A stretch of DNA of 63,910 nt, counting the filler, from Bigelowiella natans CCMP2755 (taxonomy: Eukaryota > Protista > Cercozoa), in the NCBI GenBank assembly GCA_000320545.1. It is 7 parts of 7 records of this genome, joined end to end, with 100 filler letters (N's around TTAATTAATTAA, not from the genome) between each part and the next. Parts side by side here need not be neighbours in the genome. Positions count along the whole stretch, not along the records: positions 1 to 19,774 come from ADNK01003214.1; 6 more parts are not named here. One strand, 5' to 3'. Positions 1 through 19,774 of this stretch are shown piece after piece. The notes beneath the pieces were generated by a model. The model had not been told where the DNA came from, made no database searches, and was given only the letters and a program-made list of their open reading frames with translations. Both the position numbers and the translations under genes were made by a program. Numbering within the stretch: the first letter of the stretch is position 1; every line of letters starts with the position of its first letter.

Positions 1-547
1 GGGGGTATAAGCACGGTGACAACAAGCGCACTCGTACGCGTCGCAACCATCGGTGGTATGTGAGTTTCATTTCTCCCAGCTCTATTGAGAAAGAACAGCG
101 AGGAAAGCCGATGAAGATACAGCAGGACGATATACTTCGCAGTGAGGATGGTAGAGCACAACAACACCACGACGAACTAACAACCCGGACAGATATAACG
201 TATTACGGATGTTTTGAGCTGAAAGCTTCCGGGGAGATCGTGTAGAGGAATACGCTCACGCACCATATCATCGGCAATTCATCCATAAGCTAATGCAAAA
301 CAAACGGTGATATGGATTGGCGCCACCGACAAATGAAGAGATGATGCCTCGTTTGCGTTTGTTCGACATTGTGCTTTGAAGTGGTTCGGCGTTGATTGCT
401 ATTTTCTCCACGTTGAAAAAGAAAGGCGTGTTTGCATGTACACTCTGTGTGCGTATTGTATGTATGGCACCTGTGCAGATCGATACAAGGTACAGTGGAA
501 GAGGGTTGACCCAATGCCAACAACCTTAGAAAGGTTATATAAATATA

Positions 548-585
<38 letters not shown>

Positions 586-1480
586 TATATAATTTGTTAT
601 GTATGTAATTATGTGCGTGTGCGTGTTCTCCCGCCCTGAATAAGCAGTGTATTGTAGAGAAGATGCATAATAACACCCTCTCCCCTCCCCCTTCACTTAC
701 CATTAGTGCAAGGTAGCACAGCTTGAACCTGCTCTCCAGGTGATACTGTCGGGACTTCTCATATCCATACCTTAGATTCAAAAGAATCACAATTTTGAGC
801 GTCGTCAACTCACCAAACCACACGAAACAACGACACTGGATGCCATCGGCAAGGTTCAACCGCACGCTGTATCCTTCGACGAGTAGTAACATGATGCTCA
901 TTTTTCAAAACAGTTATAAGTCGGAAAATCCATCGTGTGAAGTACCACCCAGCGCCTGAATATATTTGTCAAAGAAGAAGAATGAGTCTTTTATCCGAGG
1001 AAGACGACGCATAGGAATGTCATCCATGGCTCAGAGCATTTACCTATAATGGCGATGTTGCTCAATGTATTCCAGAACTCTAAAAGGCAAGGGTTTTATA
1101 TGTTTAAATTGGCCATGTTCGACGAAAGTTTAAAGCTTCGAAACTCCCATGTATAAACTTAAATGTTGTTACATCATCTGCTAGGTTGCGTGCGTGTTAG
1201 CGTGCAATCGCGTGCTCGGATTATGTGAAGCAGTAACCTGCAACGATGGAGCTAACGACATAATTTTCTTCGCACCTTCAAAACGGTATATCTTTTTCAG
1301 TGCGCGTACATGTGTTATATGTATCTTATTGTTTCATCACCAATCGAGTGTTGCAGTTATTCTCCCCCAAAAAGACTGAAGTTCCCTCTTGATTTCCTCA
1401 GGAGGGATAGCATCACCGATAGCACGCCAAAGAGTTTTCGCTGCTCCGCTCTCTGAACCAATACAAAACAATAAGGAACG
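1..1480 (-). CDS. Alkaline ceramidase (ACER3/YPC1-like, CREST superfamily), multi-exon; 3' end runs off the window, start codon uncertain
   Basis: Spliced minus-strand exons with GT-AG ends give FWGRITATLDW|CEENYVVSSIVA|EFWNTLSNIAII (about 1370-1044), YLALM|VVGIGSTLFHCTLYRSAQ|LMDELPMIWC (about 770-260). These match the DWCEENY..AEFWNTxSN, GSxxFH and DELPM motifs of alkaline ceramidases. Confidence 0.92.
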
Positions 1481-1726
1481 AACTCGAAGCTGACAAATGT
1501 GCGACGTGAGTTGCAATATCAATCATCACATTATTTTTTCATTCTAAGAAATCCCAAATCGGATTCTCTCATCTTCCATCTAATGGAATCGAAGAAACGC
1601 AAAGCAAAGGGCGGTTCCCGTAATTAACCCTAGCCGAAGGCTCTACTACTCCCACTGTGGCTATCCATCTCGATTGAGGGACCTGGAAGTGCCATGGAGA
1701 ATCGAGTACACAGTCCCACAGCGCTT

Positions 1727-1817
1727 CTTTTCGTCACCTGCGACATAAAATAAATGATGTCGCACCATTTATGAGGATCTCTTTTCGTCACTTGCGACAT
1801 GAAATAAACGATGTCGC
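1727..1817. repeat. Two direct copies of a 37-nt hairpin-forming unit (tgcgacat...atgtcgc)
   Basis: cttttcgtcacctgcgacataaaataaatgatgtcgc (1727-1763) and cttttcgtcacttgcgacatgaaataaacgatgtcgc (1781-1817). Confidence 0.9.
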
Positions 1818-1989
1818 GTACTGAAGCTCAGAATTTCAACGACCAATGATCAAATCAACTTAGCGTCAATTTCCTGCTTCTCCCTTTCTCCCCTCTCCCC
1901 AATTGCCTCTCCCGCTCGACCACCCTCTCCAACTTGATCAGAACTCTCATCGATTCGATGCTGTTCATTCGATGCACTCCTTCCTCGGA

Positions 1990-2720
1990 TATGACGACCA
2001 CTGTGAGTCTCGACCTGCTGCTGCCAGTCGACACCAGCTAGTTTTGACCACCACCAACAGCTAGAACAGGGTGCTGACAAGACACGCAATGATTCGTGTT
2101 TGTAGGCGCGGCTTCGTGCAACTGCGTGCTGCTAATGTGGTCCTTGCGCACGTTGTTTTGGGTTAATTCTTGGTGCAATGTTCGATGTTCATCGAAAAAA
2201 ACGACATCGTCGTCCAGACGTGCGCGTGCGTGCGCAACCCGTCGCACTCAGTGCCAGATGGGTTTGACCACGTGTTGTCAGCATGCAGCACGCGATTGTG
2301 CCGAAGATGGATTAGTTGGACTTTTGAGTGCCTGCGAGCAAGAGTGCACGTTTCAGGTCACACTAGCATCGTCAGAAATGTCTGATTTGCGTGTTCTGTG
2401 CGATCACCGCCACATCATTCTAGCAAATCACATTTAGGTTAGCAGTAGGTCGTTAGTAGGCAAATTCCATGTCGCGCAATTTTTGCCACTGCTAGCTAGC
2501 ACTGGCGATAGTAGGGAAATGAAATGTGGGGTATGGTCTACACACGGCGGTCTGTGCTACAAGCATGAGATTGTGAGGCATGCTAGCATGTGCACACGTC
2601 TAGGTGGGTGCATGCATGTTGTGTGCACAACGCACTGAGCCTTTTGTGCACACACATTGCATTGTGTACCGATTCATCAATTTATCATTTTTGTGACTTT
2701 AAGAGGTGTGTTTGTCAGGT
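1990..2720. other. TpA-poor, CTAG-rich block (moderate)
   Basis: Remaining TA lies mostly in TAG/CTA contexts. Contains catg-ctag-catg at 2579 and cactg-(ctag)2-cactg near 2487. Confidence 0.65.
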
Positions 2721-3829
2721 ACTAGGTTCTATTTTGCTCGCATTTTGGGTTGAATTAGACTGTTTCTCTCCTTTGGCAAGCACTCCTATGATGACTACAT
2801 GTCCATAAGATTCGAATTGAACCTTCTGAGGGGTAAGATACTTCTTATCTTCAGACTTACAGTCGCCTTTGCCTTCCAAATATGCTTTAACTCCTAGGTT
2901 AAAAGTCTTTGCAGTGGTTGGGAAATGGGCATTCCGGCCTCTGGTAAAGGAAAATCCGAAGTCTTTTCCGGTGGCTCCTATTCTAGCGTTATTTGATGAA
3001 AGAAGCTTTTTTATCCCCCCAGGATGATGAGATTTCTCACTGGAAACGAAATCCGAGCAGTCGCACACAAACCCGTCAATGATCGCAAGAAAATGCTCAC
3101 TGTCTTTCTCGTTATGTGCCTGGATTTCGGAAGGCCAAAAGGGACGAGGGGAGCACTTTTTCAACGACGAAGAGACGCTGATGTGGCTTGGATTAAGCTC
3201 CTCGGACCTAAGAATGCGTACCACTTTGAGCTATGGCTACAGTTTCTGTTCCGGTGTGCAACTCTTACCCATGATCAGCTGACACGACCGCCATTCGGAA
3301 GGATTCAAAAATGCGAAGTGCGATATTTGATATTTCGATGTCGCTATGATGATATCCGCGCCTTTCCCGAAAATAATGTACCAGATATTTCGACCGTGCA
3401 AGCCTGTGAAATACAGGATGTTCCTTAGTCGCGACAAAAAAAACGTGACGCCTAACAGCTTACAACGAGCGTCGTAATTTAGTAAAGTAACACAGATAAG
3501 CAGAAGGTTCTCACGGGAAAATAACAAATATCACGATAAACCGATGGAGAAAGAGAAGTGCGACAAGCAAATTTAAATGAAAAGAGGACGTTTATCGACG
3601 GCAGCGCGTGCTCCAACAGAGAGAGCTTAGCTAGTACACGCAGGAAGGCCGTCCTGGTTGCTTCAGACGCTCGCTCATCATCATGATGACACTCTTCATC
3701 ATGACACCCAACAAAGCAGAAAAGGGCGTCTATCCGTGAAAGAAATTTCTGAATGCAAAAACAGAAAGTGTTCGCCACAATAACAACTCAACCAAACACA
3801 TTCACATCACGCCCTTCCGCGATAACTAG

Positions 3830-4716
3830 ATGACGAAGGCCCCAGATAGCCGCTCTGCTGCGCCGACATCAGTGCGCGAGCAAGCTGCCTTCTCCCCTTA
3901 CATCAATACGAACAACTCCCCTCGTCATAGAAACCAGGAAGAAAAACGTAAGAATATGAGCGAGTTCCAGCCAAACCCCTCCCCAAGCCAAAACATGACG
4001 AACAACGGCCCAGACGCCAAGGAGGGAGAGGACTGCCACTACGACAACCCCCTGAGCGAGGGTAACGTTGTGAGAGGAGATGATCCCGGGCTGTTCAAAC
4101 AAGAGGCACGCTCCAGACTAGTGTCGCGGCGTCCCAGCGTATCAGCGAATAATGACAGCAATGCTAGATATGAATTTCACCGAGTTCCTACGATGCGAAA
4201 TCTGAAGGTAGGTGTGCTCTCGAGAGAGAGTTTCCAAAAGAAAAGAGAGAGACAGAAACACAGAGGAGGGAGAGAGAGACAGAGGAGGGAGGGGGAGAGA
4301 GAGAGGGAGAGAGAGAGAAAGAGAATGAGAGAGAGAAGGAGAAGGAGAAAGAGAGAGAGAAGGAGAGAGGTCTTTGTAATGTAATTGCTCTTCCTCGACT
4401 ACGTAACAGGTGAGCGAAGGCATCGACGTTTTCAACATTGAGAAGTTCATAAAGCACCTCGTATATCACTCTTGCTATCCTCTCACAATTCCATTGGTAA
4501 TTGTTGTAGTAGTATTAACGCAGTCGTTTCAATGCACACCAACCTTCTGCACTTCTACATCATCCTCACAGTATCGCACTCCTACCCCTTATTCACATAG
4601 CATGTAACAACTAAGTGCCGCTCGAATATTCTAGGTAATACTTGTAGAAGGATGGAATAGAACGTACAACCTCGCATTTCTACCAACCTACGAGGCTGCT
4701 ACTTGCAAAGTAAGCG

Positions 4717-4760
<44 letters not shown>

Positions 4761-5221
4761 GACAGACAGTTCATAGCACAATGAAGGTCAACTTCCCAAG
4801 TGGTTCTTGCGCATGTTGTTTCCTTGCATAAGTGTCCAAATGTCGTTTTTGCCGTTAGATATTCATTGTCCAGCTGTCGATGGCTTTGCTGTTTTGGTAG
4901 TTATTTCCAACGCACAAAACACACATTGGCAAAATAATTGAAAAATTCTAATGTACATCAAAAGCCGCTTGCTTTAAAACAACGAGGAGTGCAGTCAAAC
5001 GCAGGGCATTGGATGAGACTCATGCTTTCAAACCTGCCATTTCCCCCCAAAAAACGCGACTTTCACTACACCTCTATCCAAGATTACGATGGCAGAAATG
5101 TAATTCTTCTATGTTTGCTCAATAGGGCGATGATAGCGTGTCAAGCCTTAAACGACGACCCACCTGATACTATATTCCTAGTCATCCCAACAGCTCTTTA
5201 CTTCACTCACAAGCTTATGGT

Positions 5222-5256
<35 letters not shown>

Positions 5257-6019
5257 TCGTCGTTTTTAATCGTATGGTAGAAGTGGATCATGATCTCCCG
5301 TAGCAATGCTGCAAGCACACGCATACTTGAAGAAGGCGTATTCATTCGTTCATGTTCATCCTTCGGTGTTGGTTGTGCGTGTCAGATCGCATCGAAGTAT
5401 GCTGTCTTAGACGATGGAACCCATGAATGGCTGGGAAGCACCGTGGTAGGCCTCCATTCTGCTGAGTAGTACTCCAAAGCCCATCCCGCGAGTCAACCTT
5501 CGGGTGGACCGCTCGAGTACTGTTCTTGCTGCTGCCTTGTTTCACCATCTCCATTGCTTCAAAAATGATTTATCTGGCTGCTACTAGATCGAGCGACGAA
5601 TCCTTGAGTCTATTGAGCTGCATACGTGGAGAAAGGTGCTACCCTTCCTTGTTTATTTGAAGTCTCCCCCTCTATGACTGATGGAGGTGGAGGCTACATG
5701 CTTTACACTGATATGACTCATATCACTTATGCAGCTGAACGAAAACGAGATCCTTCAACAGCTTAAATATGCTGCGGAACGTCGTGGAATTGATATCTAC
5801 GACATCCATTTCTACCTATATAAGGACATTTATAGAGAGGCTGAAAAAGTGATAAACGTGGACGAAATCGCGGTAGATATCAAGGGGGCTGTAGAACCTG
5901 GCCAGAAGGTCATGAACGTATACACACCGGGCATCAATCGTGTCGAATGGTTATGATGCATAAGCTACATCAAGTTTAATGTTCTTATCATCGCTACCAT
6001 AATTTATATAAATACAATA

Positions 6020-6053
<34 letters not shown>

Positions 6054-9000
6054 CTTTCTCACCCGATATCAGGCGACCAAGTGTGAAGGCGAACACAATG
6101 ACGGTACCATGCGAGCTCGCGCCACGAGAGTTGTGGAACATAAGTCCAAAACGGGAAGAGGCAATGAGAGCGATAAGAATCAGCTCACGGACGCTGTCCA
6201 TGAGAAAGGGATGAATCGTTGCCTAGAATCAGGAAGTGAACTTAAGCGATGTGTCGGTACGGAAGAGGCTAATCCTATCAACGCAACCGCGAAGAGGAGA
6301 AAAGCAAATTTCAAAGCACATAATGGTGAATGTAGCCGAGTAGATGAACGACGAAATCTGTCAGGTCTTGTGAAAATCAAGGCGATTCCAATAGCGACCC
6401 GCATCGTCGCTCTTTCCTTGACCGACTATAGTACGACATGGCATGAATGTGTGATCTGGGCTATCTCAATCGCCCAAGGTGAGGATGGGGTCCTTCATGT
6501 CATGATGAGGATGATGTTCAATATATGTGCTCCCGATGATGTCGATAATAAAGACGAAATTTGGCTCATGGTAGTGATTCTTTTGATGATTATGACAACG
6601 ATGAAGATTATAATGATAAGTATGATCATTATTAAAACGATGATAACTGTAAGCATCACATAAATACTACTTCATCAGTTGGTAAAATCGAAATCAAAAT
6701 AACCCCCTTTTTCCTACTCGTACTCTAGCTTGCATTCCCGTAATCGTGTCCCTAGGCTGGAGGGGGGCGGTGGGCAACAACTCTGCTCTAACACTCATCC
6801 AGGTCAGTTGTAAGGTTGTAAAGAAGTAGAGCAGACAGGATAAATACACAATTTGGTATACAGCCTAACACATTTCTTCGACAGCATATTGTCGATTTTC
6901 TCTGCGCACACAATATTTAGATACGGTTCTGTTGACTTGACGATAGTATTTGTGATAACGCTGATGATACCGTAGGTGTGCTTCGGATGGTTTTTAACTT
7001 GTATGTACTTCTACGTGGCACTGATGTTCATCGATGGTGGCCGACATGATAATATACGAAGAGCTAGAATCGTGCAGGCTGCAGGGGGTGGGTCTATTCA
7101 CATCACATTACATAATAAGCGAAGTTGTATAAAAATATAGTGGTGATAGAATAGTAAGTATTTCTATCGCTCACTCACTCGCATTTTAAATTCATGTTCA
7201 AGAAAATATTTGAGAGCATTCTTTTCATGTAAAACTTGCATGTTAATATACTGAGCAGCTTTGATTGACGTCGACTCGCCTCTATTCTTCCCCAAATGGT
7301 ATGCGACATTATTTGTCGATCTTGCGTGGCCTCAGGTACATACCTTGTAGTGATGTAAGAACGAAAGCAGATGTATTGAAAATCACACCATTGTATGATG
7401 TAACATATAATGTGATATACATATATGGATATTATATATATTAGTGGCAAGTGGTAAGTGGCAAGCGCATTTGATGCTATTTATGTCCTACATATTTGGC
7501 AAGCAACTGCATATTCGTACCATAAAACGTGAAGAGGAAAGAATATCTTGGCTTAATAAGTATTCAGACGAAATATAGTTTATACATTTTGAATAGTAAC
7601 TCCTACAATCCCCTCCCCCCCTCCCTCAATCTTTACTACCTCTCAGAATATTAGTGCTTGGGTTAAACTCCGCTGGTTATTACTGAATATCGGGTATCTT
7701 ACATAGCACATCATTGTTTCACGATGAGCTTGCAACTTGCAACTTTTTCAATTATTTGATTACTTGGAGTATAGTTACAAATGAATAGTTGGCAATAGTG
7801 TGAGACCCCACACATTCATCATCTTTGAGATGACACCATGATCACATTGCAATCTTTCGGCAGTGGGCAGTTTAGAACCAGGATCACGATATACTCTTCA
7901 TACGTTACGATATTTCTCCTCGCTCTAGTGCTCTACGTCATAGCCGGTTCTGGATTCACATATTACACGATAAAAGATGTTTCATTACATATTTGCACCT
8001 TAAATCCAATCTTGTCAGATAGTATGTAGAGAAATACGAACTCAAACATAGCGTCAATTTATGAAGAATGGATCATTGGTTCCATGATCAATATAGTCCT
8101 CTCCAAGCAACTACTCTTCTCTGCTTCACCGCTATCATCACTATTGTCTACACGTCTAAAGTTTCAGAACGTTTTGATGCTAGACACAAGATCAAACTAA
8201 TGTTTTTCCCACTGCGAATACAATGTTTCTACAGCAATCTTCACAGAGACGTTGAACGAAGTCACTTTTGTGACTGTTGCTTTCATGCTAATTTGTATCG
8301 GTATCAAAACATAAATTTTCATGTTTATAATGTGTCACCGTGTCACCCCGATTTGAAGATCAGTTCTTGATGACTATACTATTGATGATTAAACATTTGA
8401 ATAATCATAACTCACGTGTTCATGTCCCTACATCTTCATTCCCTCTTTGTTGCTCCTTCCTAATAGGGTTCTTGCTCATATCGTCAATCTGGTATGCATC
8501 AGCTACAAACGAACAATTTCAGTATCAAAGCCGTTCCCTAGCAAGGATTCAATTGCGTCTAAGAGAACTACGAGCAGAAGCAAGAAGTAGCAAATGCTAC
8601 TCCCACATTAAGCGGAAACACATAGACGATAGGCTAAAGGTATTCATTTGAAACATTCATAACTGGTAGAATAAAGGAATGACAATTATTGATGATGATT
8701 TGAATATCCTATTGTTTAAAATGAATAGGCATAATTGCTTGATGTGTTTTTATATCAAAATTCTCATTTGTGCAGCGAGCAGATAGACTGATGGAATCCG
8801 CAGTTGTTCTATTGAATCATGACTCAAAACTGGAGCCCGTAAAAATTCTTGGTGATAATAATATTATTAATATGTTTTTACAAATTATGCTCGAAACTCG
8901 CCGATAAATATCAATGGCTTATTGATTTTCAGCACTGTTTCGAAAATCAGTATGCCTTCAAATCATCACTAGCAACTCTTATCAATCGATTGGAAAGTTA

Positions 9001-9165
9001 TCGAGTAATTTTGATTTTACAATACGAATCGTGATCTGTGCTTCCCTGGATTTATGTAGCATCCTTGGTGTGGGCACCGTATTGAAATAATGACATATTT
9101 GGTTTGCTGGACAGGTTTTGATGCTTCAAAAGAGCTTTACACGACGTTGGCCACTATTATCGTAG
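3830..9165 (+). CDS. Multi-exon multi-pass membrane protein, PHTF-like / 7TM ion channel (7TMIC) type C-terminus; last exon not resolved
   Basis: Spliced exons give FYVALMFIDGGRHDNIRRAR.., LFVDLAWPQ|NISAWVKLRWLLLNIG|GQFRTRITIYSSYV.., SSIWYASATNEQFQYQSRSLARIQLRL..DDRLK|RADRLMESAVVLLNHDSKLEPVKILG|FDASKELYTTLATIIV. This parallels, in order, the PHTF C-terminal motifs as I recall them (NIKMWLSLR..G; GSETNKKY; PFRLYGL..NP.LYN). Confidence 0.7.
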
Positions 9166-9479
9166 GTCATATTAAAATCTTAAAATACTGCCAACATAGT
9201 AGTAAAAGGAAAATGATCGATCGAGAAGTAAATTCATGCGTATGTATGAGTATTGATTGTTTGTTTCTATGCATTCCATTATGAAAGACGCTATAGCATC
9301 TGTAATTATGATCACTCCATTGTCGTTTGTTCGTGTTCAACACATCAAGGGTGCCTTCATCATCTTCAATGTTTCCTTTTGTTCGTATTGCTTACGTAGT
9401 TGTGTTCATAGTTCCGATCTCGTCTTGGGTTGATGATGTTTTTTTGTGTTTTCTATCCCATGTCAGGAACTGTGTTCAC

Positions 9480-10560
9480 TGTGCTTCTTGAGTTTTACAT
9501 CAACCAGCATTCTTGAGTCTCACATCAACCAGCAATGAAGCAATGAAGCAATGATCATGCACAGTTTTCCGTTTGATGGGATGATGGCAAAGTTGTTGTG
9601 CACAATGCATATTGAAGAGAAACAGTCCATTGAATCTGCATCTCTTACAGCATCGTTTGCGACGACTAGACGAAACTAAATGCGTGTCTAGTTGTGCTCA
9701 TGTGTGAGTCGTGGGGATGTGACATGTTTTCACAAGTGCCACACACTGGCACACGCTGGCATGCTTCGGTGATGCTCATGGCACTCTGGGGCGAGAGTGT
9801 TGTGCGATGTGTTGGCACAAGCTGGCAAGCTGACAAGCTAGCTAGCTAGCAAGCATGACAAAGGCAAACACCAACTGTCTGCACAATTGCAGTCCCAGCA
9901 CACAAGCTAGCAAGCTGCAGCTGCAGTGCACGCTGACAGGAATCTGGCAATGCAGAGCGCTGGAATGGCCCACTTTCGCAACAGCTGAGAAGCAATTTGA
10001 CTGGCACTGCTGGACTGCCAAAACAGGGAACACACATCTAGACGTACCAGAAACTCACACTCTGCTGGTCTGTGTCTGAATGACGTGAAACGACACTGAA
10101 CTCAAAACAGTGCTCAGACCCATCTAGCCATTGCCATCGAAGAGTGTTTGCAGCAGCACTCAGCACAAGCAAATGTTCTGATCATTTTCACTTTGCTGGT
10201 TTGTTTGCGGACGATGCCAAAATGAGTCTTGATTCATTGATTGCTTGTGCTCACTTCGTCATTCCAAGGTGCACACTTGTGCTGCAGGTGAGCTGGAAAA
10301 AACGTTCGTCTTGTTGCTGCTGGAGTGTTTGTCGAATGAGCGTGACCATTCCAACCCTGCGACAATGACAATTTCATGCCGTTCGTGCAAACGACATTCA
10401 TTTGCTCCGACTTGCATGAAGAAAGCCCCTGAGTTTCTCAGATGTTTCAGACATTGCAATCTTGGAGAGAGACAGATCATTGGCTCGGTCGTAGTTGGAA
10501 ATGGCCTGGATTGCATGTTCCCTCATGATCGAGCCTCGCTAAAACCCGCTTTAGGCAATC
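9480..10560. other. TpA-depleted, CTAG-insertion block
   Basis: Very few TA outside CTAG. Contains acga-ctag-acga 9662, caag-(ctag)3-caag about 9834, caag-ctag-caag 9903 and ccat-ctag-ccat 10120. Confidence 0.85.
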
Positions 10561-11188
10561 AAGAGCAGCTATCATAAAATGAGGGAACGACAAGCACCTT
10601 TGTTGTCGCAACAGCCACAATGCACTGGGCCGCCCCGATTCTGACCTAAATCGAGAGTGCGAAGTCCCCAGATTGATGCTTGCGCGAGTACTGTAGTTGC
10701 TGCTTCGGAAGCTTCGAACCGTATTGCGGAGATGCAGGGCATGGTTGAAGAGCGACAAAGTTTTGTGCTCCGGAGCAAGATAAATTGCTGGCAGCATTAA
10801 ACCACGCACAGGGCGCTGAGCTGAGTTCGAGGTAGATCCTCATGGCGACCAAGCTTGCTCCTTTTCCTACGTTTTCTCAGATGGTAGTCCTTGAGTGGGT
10901 TCTAATGAATGGCGGACATCATGAAGCGTCCGCATGACCAGGAGCCACCTGAGAAGTGTAAGAGGCGTCGCCCTATGCACGAGCATGGACAACCGGAACC
11001 AGAACCAACCAGTTCTCAATCATCAGGTTTTGAACCGTGTTGAAAATTAACTGTATCAATAGCACAACAGCGGAAGTTGCATTTTGAAATTTTTTTTGTC
11101 TTGGGATGCCAGCAACCGCCACATACTCGTGGCTGTTGGATAGACATTTAGAAACATACATCATGACCCTGCTATTTCTATTTAATGC

Positions 11189-12808
11189 ATGGGTATCCCT
11201 TTGTCACATCTCTCCTACCTTGTGATGACTTTGCTTCACCTTGTGCACCCCTTAGGTGTCCCACTCCTCCCGTCATCTACTAGCTATCCAACAGATATAT
11301 CCCCCATCCACACACCAGTTCGTCTAGTTCACAGAACAAAGGTTTTGTGCAATCAACTGAGGCATAGTATTTGTAATAGTTTGTTTTACTACAGGATAAT
11401 CGACCTCGCCCTTACGTATGCGACATTTGCCATCGAAGATTTACGAAACTGAGCAATAAGGATGTAACGTTTCAGTCTCCATTGCAGTGACACAATGATT
11501 CATGCATTGATGAATACATTTAGAGACACAGGAAACTTCATACAGGAGAAAAGCCATACGTGTGCAATATCTGCTCTAACAAGGCGTTTGCTCGACTGAG
11601 CTGCTTAAGGGTATCCGAAATCCGTCTTGAATTTTCTTGCTGATGTCAAGTTGTATACTATGTCAGCGCCATCAGAAATCGCATTCTCGAGAAAGACTTC
11701 TTGTTTGTTCATTTTGTGGAAAGCGGTTTGTTCATTCCAGCGATTTGCGAGTACGTACATTACATCGATTCGTGAGTCATACATCACACCATTTTACTGG
11801 TTTTAGAGACATCAAGTTCACCAGCACTCGCAGCTTCCAGCTTTTGAGAGAGAGGCTACTCTTCCACACAGCCCAATACCTCCCCTTGAGTCTGTTCCAC
11901 TACCAAGTCCGCCTCGAAAGACTAACCTCGAACAACCATCGTCGTCATACTACCGAAAGCCTTCGAAGATTTCTCCCGTCGCTGAACTATCAAGCCCATC
12001 TCCAATTAGCTCTCTTCCTTCGCCATACCACAGTCCTCGGTACTCTCACACATTTCCAAAGAATCCCAACTCGTCCCAGGGAACTCCTGAATCACAAAGA
12101 TATTTCCATCCATCGTACCATAGCAATAAAAGCCTGTCAAGTACGCCAGTGTTTCCTCAGTCTGATCTACATAATGTGGGGTTACTTCCCTCAATTCCTC
12201 CAGAAGAACTAAAGCAAAAAAGTAAATATCTACCAAGACAGCCTAGTCTGCAGCAGACAAGCTGGTCTAGAAATGTAAATCCTCCACGTAATTCCCCAAC
12301 AACAATAAGCCTTATAGACATACCAAAAGAAGTTTTTGTTCACCCCCGTCCTTCATTGTACATTGATTCGCATGACGTTCAAGAAGGGCACAAAGATTTG
12401 CGAGTCTCAGGGCGAACTTCATCTCAGCGAAAAGACCGCTCAGGGCGTGATCTCAGAGTGATTCCCTACACCTATGCACGTATTGAAGAAAGTGGTGAAA
12501 TCGAGGAACCCAGTACCAATCTCCGTTTTGTTGCATCTGTACCTCGACGAATTCCTCCGCTCGCTTCAAGAATTCCTCATATATATGCAGAGGAAACTCT
12601 TCAAACTGCACCGATATCTTTGTTACCTTCGATTAGGACTTCTGTTTTGTGGCGTTATGACTCGCCACCGCTTGAGGCAGAAGTTGATGCACGATCTTTA
12701 CTACGAGAGCGATTAGCTGCAGATGCAGTTCGCCACGCACACAGTCAACAAACATATTTCAAGTCTGAACAAAAAAAGTACCTTGATAGGAACGACGTAG
12801 AAGCCTAA
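11189..12808 (+). CDS. C2H2 zinc-finger protein (3 fingers) with a Ser/Pro-rich C-terminus
   Basis: Spliced exons give [19 protein letters not shown]|[29 protein letters not shown]|[28 protein letters not shown]|RHQVHQH, including the canonical TGEKPY linker. The last exon continues into ORF 12149..12808. Confidence 0.9.
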
Positions 12809-12949
12809 CAGCTCTTTCACTTACGTTAAAATTCACATTTTTGCTTACAGTCATACTAAATTACATGAACAACCCGCTAAAAATATCGTTGCGAGTTGGG
12901 GCACGTGAACTAGCACTGCTTGAGTTTGGATTACTGCTCAAAAGTCACC

Positions 12950-14450
12950 ATGTTGTTGAACTCTCGACTAGACTCTACCAATTAGCACGATTTTCTCATA
13001 CATACGATCCCAGTGAATTCACATTGATGTACGAAGGATTTTGTTCACTACACAATCAACCTACACATTTTGTTGTGTCAAGATCAGTAACTTGTCTCAA
13101 ACATCATTGCATCTCTAGTCCCACAAAATGCGCGCAGGTCATGCTAGCATGGTGCACAAATTGAACACCTAGATGGTCTAGTGTTCATGCACTTCAAGCA
13201 TAGTTGCACATCTCTAGATCAGCATGCAATGCAGTGCGACATCCATTTCCAGTCCGCTAAGTCTTTCTTTGGTTCTGTGTGAGTGTCATGGAAACGTTGG
13301 TTCTGCTAGTCTAGACACCGTCTGTGACAAACAATCAAGCAAAGTGGCTAAACTAGCAAAGACTTGTTCATTGATGAACCCAAAGTCAAGAGGCACACTG
13401 GCATGGCACCACAGCAGTCTAGGCCGTGTCTAGATCCAAACTAAAAAAGTCTTCAAGAGGGACGTTGCAAAAAGAAATCTTCGTTTGAGACCTCAAGATC
13501 ACAATGAGGTCATCCACACTGGCACTCCAGCACTGTCTAGCTAGCTAGCTAGCTCGTTCTAGCGCTCACACCGATCTAGCTAGCTAGCGATGATCCTGAC
13601 TCCAATGACATCTGAAGCACTAGCTAGCTAGAGCAGTCTCGCTAGCCCGTGCAGCGTGGCACACCTTGCTGGCTTGCATTGCGATCGTCAAATTTCTGGA
13701 TCATCATTCCAAAGCTAGAAAGGCCGCACGTGCAGACCAAGCTAGCGAAAGACGTGCATTCACGTTGAGATGATGCGTGTTTCATGCACGTTTGATCTAG
13801 TGATGGCCAATCTAGCAGCGCTAGAATGGACATGAAACACTCCTCACTAGCTCCAGAGCTAGCTAGCTCACCCGCAAAGCCCAGAGGCACCTGCTAGCCT
13901 GGGGCAATCTAGCAATCTAGCACTGCCACAACAGATAGGCCCAGCGACACCGACACATGGCTAGATGGACAGCTAGCTTGTTTGTTGTTTGCTAGTTTGG
14001 CTAGTTGGGGCAACCTAACAACACGCACATTGATTTGGAAACAGCTCTCACAATTGACTAGTTGAAGCCGCTGAACCGCTTTCTAGCTTTGCTAGTTTGG
14101 TGTGCGCGAAATTTCGCAGCATCCCTAGATCCGCTAGCTAGCTCTAGAGCTAGGCTCTAGGGCTAGTAGGTCCGGCCACACGCACACGCAAGCTAGGAAG
14201 ACATTTCTAGATTTCTCGATTTGACGGCACATGTCTAGATGTCTGGTGTGCACTGATGCGTTGCATGCATTAATTGTGTCCCAGCGTTGAGAGCACACCA
14301 CCAAGCATATCAGCATGGCTAGATGGCTAGATCTAGAGACGGCTTGATGTCTAGATATGGCATGGCTTGCTAGCTTGACTAGTTCTAGAGTTGATACTGC
14401 TGTTGATGCCATGTTCATCATGCTTAGTTTCAGCGAGACTAATGTGCCAT
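12950..14450. other. TpA-depleted block with the highest density of NNNN-CTAG-NNNN and (CTAG)n arrays
   Basis: About 16 perfect duplicated-flank CTAG sites between 13140 and 14392, plus (ctag)n runs at about 13538-13552 and 13576-13587. Confidence 0.9.
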
Positions 14451-15611
14451 CACATCAGAATCCATCCCTGGGTTCTCCTCTTCTTAATCATTTTCGTTCT
14501 CGCACGCCGAAGTTGTGAACATTTTTCACAACTGTTGTTTGTGAATCCGGGGCAAAACTGAGCCAAGCTGTGACATGAAGAACACACTGTTGGCATGTTT
14601 CTTGGATCAGGGTGATAATCCTGCGGAATTTTGGATTTGTTTGTTTTGACCCATTTAAAAATACGCTCAGTGTACTCTGGTCTTGACATTGGCGTCAAAA
14701 ATTTGCGCCACTTGATTACCTACCGAAAAGAACAAAATCGATGCATTGCCGATGCGCTTAAGTAATACGGATTGTGTCCTGTAAAACGAACATAAGATGC
14801 TTCTAAATTTTATCTTTTAAAGCGTTAGCTTGGATACCGACCAAATGTGCATGTACGCATAAATGTTCTAGCTTCATACGCATAAATGTTCTAGTTTCAT
14901 ACCTGCAACCATGATGTGGGAATTAAATGAATCTCTTCTTGTGTGTAGATTATTCCTGGCTAAATATGTACAAATATTGGCATAGACTATTCATCTCATG
15001 GAGTAAATGCTTGCGTTTTGGAACCTTGTAGAGAGTCATGCAGAGATAATTTTCAATGATAGCCGCCACCTGAGTGAAGAAGTAAAGATTTCATTCAGTA
15101 TTTAAACATTTAATTTGAAAGAACCTGCTCCATGTTCTGCATTTTACGTTCACAGGGCACCTGTGCAGGAAACAAGGGTATGCACTTAGCAATCTTCCTC
15201 TGGACATATCGCTGAGGGACATCTTGGAAACCACATCTCCCTTCTATGGCTCCATGTTCCCTGAAATCAAACATGTATCCATATTATGAAGAGAATCTAT
15301 GTCGCGCTTCGGAACACCTTACGTAATCTTCAAGTAAGCTTTGTCATTTTTCTCGATCCCAGTCAAAACGGCTCGAAGTCCCATCAATTTTACGGTCTTC
15401 AGTTGATATGAGTGAAAATCTTTGGGCTTCTTACTGCCAAACGACCGAATCTATCAGTTGTTCAAAATTGATTCAGCTGATGTCACGACTCAAAAATGAT
15501 GCATGTTTTACTTGAACCATGTCCCCCACGCGAACATTTCCTCTCTTCTCATCACCCTTACAGCGGAAGGGCTGCATTTTCCAAGCGTGATTTGGTCGGT
15601 TCCTAGATCAT

Positions 15612-15853
15612 TCTCTTTGATGCACATCCGAGATCATCCGAGGATTCAGAGACAATCCGGAGAGGTCGCTCCTTGGAAGAAACTCCAACGAAACTCCAGA
15701 TGTCATGTGCCTTGGAAAACATGAGTGCGACAGAACATTATTTGTGTTATTTTAAAGAAAACACGTCCTATGGACGTCGTGGCATTGCCGAGAAAGAACC
15801 TTGCACTTTGTGCTGTCGCAGCATTCCTGGACCTCGGATGTGCATCAAAGAGA
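15612..15853. repeat. Perfect 21-nt inverted repeat pair, 200 nt apart
   Basis: tctctttgatgcacatccgag (15612-15632) and its reverse complement ctcggatgtgcatcaaagaga (15833-15853). Confidence 0.85.
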
Positions 15854-16110
15854 GCGAAATTTTCCAAAATAAAAAAGCGCTTTCGATGATTCAGCAGACA
15901 GATGTGATGTGCATTGACTCATCGTGGCGCATACCCGTCTCGTGAAGCCTTCAACCCTTTGAGTCTCATTTCATCCTCCCAGGTGCACGCCTTCGAGTGC
16001 AACGCAGGCAAATCCTGGTTTACATCACGCCGAATTTCCTAATAATTTCTCTTCAGAACTCGTGTTGATTGCTACTGTTCATGTGCACTTGGGGTTAAAA
16101 GAGCATTTAG

Positions 16111-17392
16111 ATGAAGGAAGCTGCCCTCGACGCTTCGACGGTTCGGGGTTTGCGGTGGAGGTTCGTCGTCCTTTGGGTAGTGCTGCTAGCCTCCTCGGTC
16201 TTCCTCTTGGACACTTACATCGTACCAGCATGGATCCTGTGGTGTAATCCCCCGTGGCCTGCTCTCCCCCGCCTGAATATAAAGAAAGGGGGAGTTTCCA
16301 CGGCAGGGTTTTCCAACGGTGCCGATTTCGCACACCAGTTGCACATTACTTACAGTTCTGTGATCGATGCGACGTGCGTTTTCGCGGGCCAGCCGTTCCA
16401 CTGTGCAGCGACCAGATTTCCTGATGACCATCTTGTGGAAGCCATCCCAGCGTCCTCCGTTCCGACATGTGTTGGCTGTCCAAGCGGCAAGACCCTCATA
16501 TATGATCACTGCAAGGTAACCTGCAAATATTTCACTCTTATCCAATATTTTGATTACGTGCAACGATGTTACAACGCTCCAATCCTAGGCACACCCAGAA
16601 TGGGTTGACATTGGTGCTCTCCCTGATTACCCTCGTCGAGTGTGCGATGGGCGCGGCCTGAATACCAGCGTCTGTATGGACCATACCGACAACCTGAGCG
16701 ACGATCGAGTCTTCCTTTTCCGAGGCACTCAAGATCGGTGCTACAAGCCAGGCTCTGTTGAAAACGTCCAGCATCTTTACTCGATGTTCCTTGAGAAACC
16801 TGAGGCGCAAATTCGCATGGTGAACACCGTAGGCTACGCTCACGCGTTCCCTCGAAATAAGACCAAAATACCGGGCAAAAAGCACGGCTATGATGGAGCA
16901 GGAGAGTGCCTAAGATGGATATATCCCGGAGGTATCAAACCAGCAGTCGACTTTAAGAGAAAGAATATTTATAACTACAACCAGGATGAATTTATGCAAG
17001 CAATCTCTGGAGTTGGCATAAATGGGCGCGGTCACTTGTACATACCAGATGCTTGCAGTCCCCCTACAAAGGCAGCAGGAGCTAATGCTGACGCCACTAC
17101 TGCTCTCCACAAGACGAAACCGTGCCGTCTCGTAATTCTTGCTGCTGGATGCAATGGGTTTGGAGGATGGATTGAAAACTTTGCAAAATACGCAGAGAGC
17201 AATGACATAGTCTTGCTGCAACCGTGCGTCGGAGGGTATGTTGACCCTTTCCGTTACCCGGGCGCACATGAAATTAAACGAGGAATGCTTGATGTGTATG
17301 GACAACTCAGTAGAGACTACACGATGAAATCTGCGCCACACATGAAATTTGTAGGACAGGTATTGGAAAAATTGAGTGGATGGAAGGTGTGA
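16111..17392 (+). CDS. Poly(3-hydroxybutyrate) depolymerase-like alpha/beta hydrolase with an N-terminal hydrophobic segment; 2 exons (16111-16515, 16589-17392), about 402 aa
   Basis: The GT-AG intron 16516-16588 joins both ORFs in frame. Motifs: VSTAGFSNGADFAHQLH (GxSxG near the N-terminus), FAGQPFHCA, FRGTQD (Asp) and YAHAFP (His), as in type-II-like PHB depolymerases. Confidence 0.8.
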
Positions 17393-17519
17393 TTTACGTC
17401 ACAATTTAGCGATGCAGCAAGGAGGATTCTTGAAATTTTGTCACAGGAACCTCTGGCAGATCAACATTAGAAACTAGGAAACCATTATTAGCATGTACAC
17501 AAAAATGTCGTTTGGCTTC

Positions 17520-17802
17520 AATTCGATGCGCCCAGGCGTACACGCTACGGTGCATGCTGGCATGCACTCAAATCCAGCTGGCTCTGGAACTTGGCTTCAT
17601 GATGTTCAATTTCAGGCTTTTTCCTTCGCTAGATCGCATGAGATGAGAGCTTGTTGAATGCAACAACGTTGAGAATATTTTCCATTGAAGACGATGGCTT
17701 CCGCGACTCAGCGCCCGCAGCCTTGTCTTGTGGCATCCACACACCTAGACACAACTAGACAAACACACACAGACACATCTAGACATGCACACACATGCGC
17801 AT

Positions 17803-17838
<36 letters not shown>

Positions 17839-18400
17839 GCACACGCACAAACACACACACACATCTAGACATGCGCATGCACTAGTGCACGCACACACGC
17901 ACACATGTGCTAGCACGCACGCTAGCACGTACGCACACTGGCTAGACCACATCTGCGAAGCAATCCATGGCTAGCAGACAGTATTGCTAGATTGACAGGC
18001 TAGCAGCAAATAATCATGCAGGGCTGGCCATCTAGCCACGTGTGTGCACATGGAATGGCAATGCCAGCATGCTAGCATGCAATGCCAGATCGAACCATTT
18101 GATCCAGCATTGTTGAAAATCCCGCAACGCAGTCGCAGTGTGCGGCAACCTGGCAACACCACTTCACGCTGAGTTGTGCATGCCTGGAGCTGCCAGCTTG
18201 CTTCTTCAGTCTAGCTAGTGCTAGAGTGCTGTGAGCGCATCTTGTTCTGCGTACATGGCATGACATGGGGAGGACAGCTCAGGACAATCATGATGATGAC
18301 TAAGAGGGCTAGAGGGGGGCACTGAGTGCAATGCATCTAGCTAGCTAGTCTCTAGCTAGCTAGTAGTGGCACCTGTCTAGCTGAGCAAGGAACATCAAGG
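17520..18400. other. TpA-depleted, CTAG-insertion block with a degenerate CA/TG repeat
   Basis: acac-ctag-acac 17741, acaa-ctag-acaa 17751, acat-ctag-acat 17775 and 17861, cacg 17918, attg 17983, catg 18068, agtg 18217, aggg 18305. Confidence 0.88.
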
Positions 18401-18846
18401 TTGACTATGTTAAACGGTTAATTCGGTCATGCAGTCTCTATCATTTTGCATGTCGCGCTCGGTGTATCTCATGCATTTCCCCCTTGAGCATTCCGTGTAG
18501 AAGCTCCATGTGGATGTCGACCTGCCAATGAGAACAAAACAAGACCATGTCTTTGCGTCAGAGCCCACACTTATGTTCCTCAACTGTTTTCTGTTAGCAT
18601 ACCTCTCCGATGTCGTCGATTGACTTTAGAATCTCCTCGCGGAGTACAACAGCAGCCATTTTCGCAGCTGCTACGGTTACCCCGGAATCCAGCACTAGGC
18701 TTATCTTTTTGTTGTGGTGGGAAGAGATATAAGATGCCATCTTCTAGATTTTGTGTGTCGATCAATATCATTCTTAAGATATAGGTTTAGAATTTTGTAA
18801 ACATCATACATCAATGATATCACCGCCCTTCTGGTTCGATGAATGC

Positions 18847-18885
18847 TCAGCATACTATTGCCATATCATCGCAGAGCAGGGTACA

Positions 18886-18921
<36 letters not shown>

Positions 18922-19054
18922 GTCATCGTCATCAACTACTACTACTACTACTAATACTACTAAGTAATGGTGTCTCACCTCAGCGAGTACGTATGAACTG
19001 TGATGATGATTTTCCTCTGTGATCTGTGACGATGATGATGACGATGACGAGGAG

Positions 19055-19085
<31 letters not shown>

Positions 19086-19714
19086 GACGGAGATAATGAA
19101 GGGACATATGAGCCAACGACGAGAGCACCTTCTGGTTTTCTTGGACGGAGGCAAAAACCTGAGAATCAGAAGAACAGAGAGGAGGAGGAGGAGGAGGAGG
19201 AGGAGGAGGAGGAGGCCACGAGACAATAAAGCACAGATTCCTTATTTCTCCAGAATATGAAAACCGTATGCACATTTCTCTCTTAGCCTACCCCTTGTTC
19301 AGAAGGGTATAATGTGAAGAGCGACAACAGAATGGCGTCCATTCCCAAACACACCAACTGACTGACCTCTAAGATATCCGCTTCGATCTCCTGTTGCGTT
19401 CGCCGAGGCGAGGGCTCGGTGCCAATGGCAGCAGTGACAGCAGCAGCAGCAGTAGGAGGAGGGGGAGAAGGAGAAGGAGAAGGAGAAGGAGAAGGAGCAT
19501 CGCTGCCAGCAGCCTGTGAAGAGGACATTGGAAAATCAGCAGAGGACTTGTGCTCGTCCTCGTCGTCCTTCTTCCCAATAGCCGCGCTACGGCTGCTGCC
19601 CTTGGCGATTGGATGATGAGAGTCGGAAGAGGCTGGTTTGAGCCCATCGTTGTCATTTGCCTCCTCGCGGTCAGGATGCGCTTCGTTCTCAACGGTGGGA
19701 GAGCGATGATCCAG
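18847..19714 (-). CDS. Probable exons of a hypothetical low-complexity protein (3' part; contig end)
   Basis: An AG..GT-bounded exon reads LDHRSPTVENEAHPD...IEADILE and is followed by VFASVQENQKVLSSL. No family recognised. Confidence 0.35.
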
Positions 19715-19774
19715 CTGGTGGCATAAATACATAAATATAAATATATAGAGAGAGAGAGAGGGGGGGGGGGGGGG

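Follow-up and report, generated by a model that had tools for sequence, protein, structure and literature searches.

Uniform CTAG micro-insertions with a short target-site duplication in the genome of Bigelowiella natans

The window analysed here is a stretch of 63,910 nucleotides from the chlorarachniophyte alga Bigelowiella natans CCMP2755 (assembly GCA_000320545.1; 91.4 Mb in 3,736 contigs), and its first part, positions 1–19774, carries many copies of a small lesion in which the tetranucleotide CTAG lies between two identical 4-nt sequences that vary from site to site. The lesions are gathered into islands, none of which is assigned to a strand. The type example is at 13140..13151, where CTAG lies within a CATG duplication. 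It belongs to the main island (13089..14400), a non-coding and TpA-depleted region that is present in single copy in the genome according to a paralogue search, and that contains 19 perfect lesions with a duplication other than CTAG itself, in addition to nested runs and near-perfect and edited examples. TpA-to-TpG/CpA hypermutation of viral and transposon DNA has already been published for this organism (bioRxiv 10.64898/2026.01.13.699255), and that preprint makes no mention of CTAG. Lesions whose cores were later edited to CCAG and CTGG are found at 13523..13534 and 13665..13676, respectively. Between 13537 and 13631 there are runs of three and four CTAG, of which the triples fit insertion into an earlier CTAG, the duplication then being CTAG. 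The densest run spans 13890..14392, with lesions at 13890, 13905, 13957, 13988, 13997, 14054, 14079, 14088, 14121, 14140, 14153, 14203, 14231, 14315, 14366 and 14381.

Three further islands lie in the same part. The second (9497..10210) is TpA-poor, with perfect lesions at 9662, 9903 and 10120, a triple at 9838 and five edited cores. The third (17470..18400) contains 11 perfect lesions and nested runs, and is placed directly 3′ of an intact, expressed host gene on the + strand (16111..17392; two exons, 402 aa, JGI Bigna1 91486) that is itself free of lesions. A weak island at 2030..2610 has a 5-nt duplication at 2056, a perfect lesion at 2579 and, near 2492, a doubled core whose flanks are 5 nt long. 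Removal of the lesions from these islands in silico revealed no long reading frame.

The association of CTAG with identical flanks is far beyond chance. Positions 1–19774 contain 132 CTAG, of which 41 have identical 4-nt flanks, and the tetramers that rank after it on this measure are dinucleotide microsatellites only. Within 13140–14392 there are 56 CTAG, 19 with an identical non-CTAG flank; shuffling the flanks 10,000 times gave a mean of 0.71 such matches and a maximum of 6. Just 10 of the 66 TpA steps in this segment fall outside CTAG, and a period-8 match is elevated solely at the four positions preceding the core. An earlier, sequence-only reading of this DNA had listed 29 sites within 1–19774, all of which are exact; to these can be added five perfect sites (13711, 13793, 14079, 17470 and 17878) and ten with a CTGG or CCAG core. 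That reading had also expected CTAG to stand out among the tetramers. It does so, the excess of identical flanks being seen for CTAG and its edited cores and for no other tetramer. Two nearby features may be noted. A 23-nt tandem duplication at 14857–14902 holds CTAG, with the flank pattern absent, and the tract at 15433–15738 is TpA-poor and without lesions.

Comparison of repeated sequences shows that the lesions are true insertions of 8 nt with target-site duplication. At L032:4943, inside a multi-copy element, the assembled contigs of all four read sets have an 8-letter gap, and according to a pattern search at this repeat site ACCT occurs once in ten copies, whereas in one further copy it flanks CTGG on both sides. 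At another repeat site the lesion is common to all seven dispersed copies, and its core has been edited in two of them. Some lesions therefore predate the spread of their host elements and others postdate it, and editing came later. The proposal that each event adds 8 nt with a 4-nt duplication, and the empty alleles that it implied, are thus both borne out by paralogues that are short by exactly 8 nt. The lesions are also present in independent reads, since fourteen DNA runs (2021–2025) contain all of the 734 sampled words of 10400–17400. The runs are flagged as possible sources of the assembly, but the reference is from 2012 and the resequenced ancestor from 2021 (bioRxiv 10.64898/2026.01.13.699255). 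We infer that these runs are those of the same preprint.

Could the pattern arise by slippage, by survival of CTAG sequences resistant to editing, or as an artefact of library or assembly? CTAG is the most frequent TpA context left in edited blocks, and the duplication is lacking at about a quarter of isolated island CTAG, which may be native. Yet slippage and survival do not account for an excess confined to one tetramer and its edited forms, nor slippage or artefact for the empty paralogues. An artefact would not be common to seven dispersed copies with editing in two of them, or recur in all of the fourteen runs. These explanations are refuted, and we attach practically no weight to them.

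The local counts that follow come from a 286-kb sample, corresponding to 0.3% of the genome, that was picked around known sites and in which densities are therefore inflated; genome-wide counts were controlled using the reversed pattern. The duplication is predominantly 4 nt in length (121 cases compared with 3.7 in the control), and there is no excess at 1–3 nt or at lengths of at least 6 nt. A minor class with a 5-nt duplication, ∼6% of the total, is nevertheless real, so that a length of 4 nt stands as the rule and not as an invariant. There are 20 such cases locally where ∼2 are expected by chance, one 5-mer gives 37 genome-wide matches against 1 in the control, and 90% of the local cases are M-first/K-last, the same end preference as in the 4-nt class. 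The target consensus is S^M-H-D-K^S, and is alike in TpA-poor and TpA-normal settings. Both target ends are constrained together at 212 of 279 sites, and recognition is therefore two-sided. Immediately before the core there is mostly G or T, with G the most frequent, and immediately after it mostly A or C. The lesions thus exhibit a symmetric staggered cut of 4 nt, sometimes 5, a duplication, a constant palindromic CTAG core, and recurrence in islands. The 4-nt staggered cut with duplication of the target, suggested from the first inspection, is upheld by the empty and filled paralogues together with the symmetric target preference.

This geometry bears on two processes that break or prime DNA without a transposon. 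Topoisomerase II makes 4-nt staggers, and the defective enzyme gives rise to 4-bp duplications; such breaks might be filled and joined through a tag. However, the geometry of topoisomerase II is fixed at 4 nt, in conflict with the 5-nt class, and it adds no constant insert. Alternatively, the lesions could be extremely truncated products of target-primed reverse transcription, but those vary in length and are one-sided, while the lesions form no length series and are constrained at both ends. We regard this pair of explanations as very improbable.

The core is uniform. Among the 100 genome-wide matches listed with 1–7 nt between two ACAT sequences, 17 have CTAG and none has CT, AG, CAG or CTG. 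Nested insertion can account for the tripled cores (34 perfect, and a further 8 whose third unit is altered). Doubled cores (n = 36; ∼2% of events) are not generated at all in a simulation that permits nested insertion alone, from which we infer that each side supplies a whole CTAG; the alternative is loss of one unit in a nested event. The first reading had suggested a footprint of an element with CT...AG ends. A footprint stays among the leading options, although, given the doubled cores, a complete CTAG contributed by either side is a better fit than a simple joining of CT to AG. At other insert lengths, an excess of 2-nt inserts looks like purine–pyrimidine tracts, probably edited TA repeats. 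The nucleomorph telomere, with its repeat unit TCTAGGG, was rejected as a source, given that no such 7-nt inserts occur and that the core is most often preceded by G.

How widespread are the lesions? Genome-wide, the ATGG flank class has 718 matches against 5 in the reversed control, and the ACAT class has 1,919 against 24; among 100 listed of the latter 1,919 the core is CTAG in 87, CTGG or CCAG in 12 and CCGG in 1. Because local densities are inflated by the choice of sample, the total was extrapolated from the fraction that the ACAT class makes up of unseeded sites in the sample (5.7%), giving an estimate of about 29,000 perfect lesions (18,000–48,000). They are strongly clustered. Another perfect site lies within 300 nt of 310 of 330, the remaining 20 being isolated, and the density in islands is ∼12 per kb. 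Outside the islands lesions are nearly absent, non-coding sequence included; in long TpA-normal frames the pattern is found at 2 of 124 CTAG, compared with 220 of 783 outside such frames. Local re-targeting was rejected, as the spacing within islands is roughly that of random placement under the target preference.

The process has recurred for a long time, chiefly in islands of non-coding DNA. In a mixture fit, 74% of isolated island CTAG are lesions, and their duplicate copies have diverged by 4%. Taken with the published intergenic mutation rate of ∼5e-10 (bioRxiv 10.64898/2026.01.13.699255), this places the mean lesion age roughly near 4e7 generations. None of the 21 new indels reported in that preprint for the mutation-accumulation lines is a CTAG lesion; this says little, since a rough calculation predicts just 0.8–1.8 new lesions in the 3,132 generations of the experiment.

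TpA hypermutation is the obvious process with which to compare the lesions. It is confirmed directly by a virus-like gene that has an unedited relative: at the 39 TpA positions of the relative, the genome copy reads TG or CA at 30 and keeps TpA at one. Lesion cores are subject to the same editing, with edited cores at 47 of 167 sites in TpA-poor surroundings but 7 of 116 in TpA-normal ones. TpA content is normal in 25 of 44 islands, and these have the same lesion density of ∼12 per kb as the TpA-poor ones, contrary to the initial view that lesions are concentrated where TpA has been erased. All islands are CpA/TpG-rich, the TpA-normal ones to the same excess. Conversely, young elements with no TpA remaining have just 1–4 lesions each, and the TpA-erased virus-like gene has none, its frame being open for 486 codons. 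TpA editing is therefore fast, and the build-up of lesions slow and partly independent of it. The same observations lend no support to the idea that the lesions serve targeted gene inactivation.

The sequences used in this comparison have some features of their own. The edited virus-like gene (L032:603-766 and 7390-8826) probably derives from a virophage or Polinton-like virus, and is interrupted by an insertion of 6.6 kb that has a ∼9–11 bp duplication. Its unedited relative (L074) is 81% identical, and adjoins collagen and peptidase S74 genes. A distant relative of the encoded protein is found in several copies in the nucleomorph of Lotharella oceanica (L077:10001-10621), which hints at viral insertion. 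A 7-kb block almost without TpA (L032:3435-10000 and L033:1-660) comprises two nested elements. Element A has TGT...ACA ends, a 4-bp duplication and ∼20 copies; element B is hAT-like, with an 8–9 bp duplication and copies that are 91–94% alike, and has apparently continued to spread after editing. A 40-bp motif at L032:6365-6404, where the summed depth is very high and loose ends are numerous, is a high-copy repeat. In Table S2 of bioRxiv 10.64898/2026.01.13.699255, edits in TAG context are few (20 of 211) and strand-skewed (17 versus 3). CTAG may resist the TpA editor.

The main rival to the reading favoured below is that the lesions are written by the host. A domesticated integrase, or a nuclease acting with a tailing polymerase, would cut silenced chromatin with a 4-nt stagger and add CTAG to each 3′ end, after which the tails would anneal. 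No long element would ever be involved, and the result would be a programmed micro-insertion mutator that places a fixed 4-bp palindrome at integrase-like cuts, as a slow second arm beside TpA hypermutation. The uniformity of the insert and the lack of a parent element in the 286 kb are in keeping with this, as is the CpA/TpG richness of all islands, a sign of past editing. The contrast between ∼12 lesions per kb in islands and 20 of 330 isolated suggests targeting, and a single H3K9me3/H3K27me3 state marks transposons and silent genes in B. natans (10.1101/2025.03.17.643675). Moreover, in bioRxiv 10.64898/2026.01.13.699255 a fixed ACA ends many new insertions in the mutation-accumulation lines, hinting at tag-adding repair. 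Against a host system, lesions are few or absent in young, fully edited elements and in the edited virus-like gene, so that it would be a poor defence, and many lesions arose where editing had stopped or never acted, as shown by TpA-containing duplications and unedited cores. We know of no enzyme that adds a fixed palindromic tetramer. Overall we consider a host-written tag rather unlikely. As a separate observation, ACA or AACA forms the end of many of the new insertions in Table S2 of that preprint, and AACA is also the outcome of one 4-base replacement; these are possibly the products of a second, active process of tag-adding repair or retro-priming.

The reading that we favour, and to which we give an even chance, is that each lesion is the religated empty donor site of a putative cut-and-paste element with CTAG at the start of its ends. 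The element would be inserted by a DDE transposase or integrase, and its inverted repeats would start with the palindrome, so placing CTAG at both ends. On excision the non-transferred strand would be cut four bases inside each end, leaving a self-complementary CTAG overhang on each flank; annealing and ligation would then generate a single CTAG, and rarely both overhangs would be kept to give a doubled core. A few copies hopping over ∼10^7–10^8 generations could leave tens of thousands of scars and few parents. Confinement to islands would follow from chromatin targeting together with selection against long insertions in genes. Scarcity outside islands is to be expected here because the first step would be a long, harmful insertion. 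The absence of truncated cores among the 100 listed ACAT matches fits sticky-end religation, and joint constraint on both target ends is as expected of a symmetric enzyme.

Several results weigh against donor-site scars. The 286 kb yielded no element that combines CT...AG ends with a 4-nt duplication, although at 0.3% of the genome this is a weak test. Profile searches of the genome gave no match to PF13358 (Tc1/IS630) or PF01609 (IS4-type), nor to PF13843 (piggyBac), for which the control was uninformative. A cut four bases inside the element end is without precedent in the literature searched. Selection alone is unlikely to explain the islands, because they would cover just a few Mb of ∼33 Mb of intergenic DNA. 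Element A, the sole readable element with a 4-bp duplication, was rejected as the parent since its TGT...ACA ends and its flank pattern differ. The first reading had offered an excision footprint or a dedicated cassette; both remain leading options, while the parent element that it envisaged is missing from the 286 kb.

Transposase and integrase domains are present in the genome. They comprise LTR pol frames, about nine stand-alone rve frames (335–411 aa), 15 DDE_Tnp_4 matches and two DDE_1 (PF03184) frames. One DDE_Tnp_4 match (G000:C1193:114374-114796) is broken by a single TAG stop, possibly because a CTAG lesion lies within this transposase gene. The stand-alone rve frames allow a different route, in which a virophage, Polinton-like virus or transpoviron that encodes an rve integrase and has CTAG cores at its termini inserts with a 4–5 nt duplication and is later looped out by recombination between the cores, so that one core stays. 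The genome contains virophage-derived regions (bioRxiv 10.64898/2026.01.13.699255), and conservative recombination would account for the uniform core. But recombination does not produce the doubled core, large elements would have had to arrive tens of thousands of times, and no chromodomain co-locates with the rve frames, for which reason a chromodomain integrase was also rejected. We judge this route improbable.

The donor-site reading can be set against known systems. The closest in architecture are ISY100 and Sleeping Beauty of the Tc1/mariner/IS630 group, which similarly leave a duplication, a remnant of the element ends and a second duplication. ISY100 is cut two bases inside its 5′ ends, and its self-complementary remnant allows the donor to religate to one fixed duplication–palindrome–duplication junction (PMC2170065); Sleeping Beauty has 3-nt non-complementary overhangs and a footprint (PMC7351741). 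However, that group targets TA, while here there is a variable 4–5 nt duplication, a 4-nt remnant and ∼10^4 scars, with no PF13358 domain in the genome and no parent within 286 kb. Ginger2/Tdd and LTR/retroviral integrases share the 4-bp (in some cases 5-bp) duplication and a weak symmetric target preference (PMC2836005, PMC4477651), but their ends are TG...CA, unlike the 4-nt CT...AG insert. Ginger1 and Ginger2 have TGT...ACA termini and a CCGG/CCGT or RTATAY target, in contrast to the CTAG insert and S-M-H-D-K-S target. In piggyBac, 4-nt complementary overhangs also lead to a uniform repair product (PMC7351741), but there the TTAA target is restored, whereas here the empty site lacks CTAG and 8 nt are gained. 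Helitron 3′ ends involve no duplication, insertion between A and T, and a longer body; here there is a duplication, and the core is mostly preceded by G/T and followed by A/C. hAT elements have a duplication of ∼8 bp and variable footprints derived from flanking bases, in contrast to a 4-nt duplication and constant core. TpA hypermutation shares the genome, its signature is found in islands and some inserted cores have been edited by it, but it makes substitutions only, and lesions accumulate also where TpA is normal. In short, the lesion resembles a mariner-type footprint with an integrase-type target, and on the features tested it fails as Tc1/mariner, Ginger, piggyBac, hAT or Helitron.

The lesion is not described in the literature searched, a coverage that left outside most subscription journals and Repbase. 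A metagenome scan and a viral scan for the pattern returned chance matches or unrelated tandem repeats only, searches for homologues in other chlorarachniophytes reached transcripts only, and no lesion was seen in the virus-like relatives or in 20 kb of the Lotharella nucleomorph. The mutational process appears to be unreported, and its uniform marks number roughly 20,000–45,000 in an alga that can be cultured, has a genome sequence and is covered by public resequencing and chromatin data. If these are footprints, they would imply a transposase of new geometry, with a variable 4-nt target and palindromic sticky-end excision, and provide a datable record of past jumps that is invisible to ordinary repeat annotation. 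If they are written by the host, they would represent genome editing of a new kind, and this in an alga for which a TpA-specific mutator has only just been demonstrated.

Elsewhere in the first part of the window, exon fragments are found at 11637–12212 and 2715–3224, with weak C2H2 zinc-finger matches and a cytochrome b5-like match.
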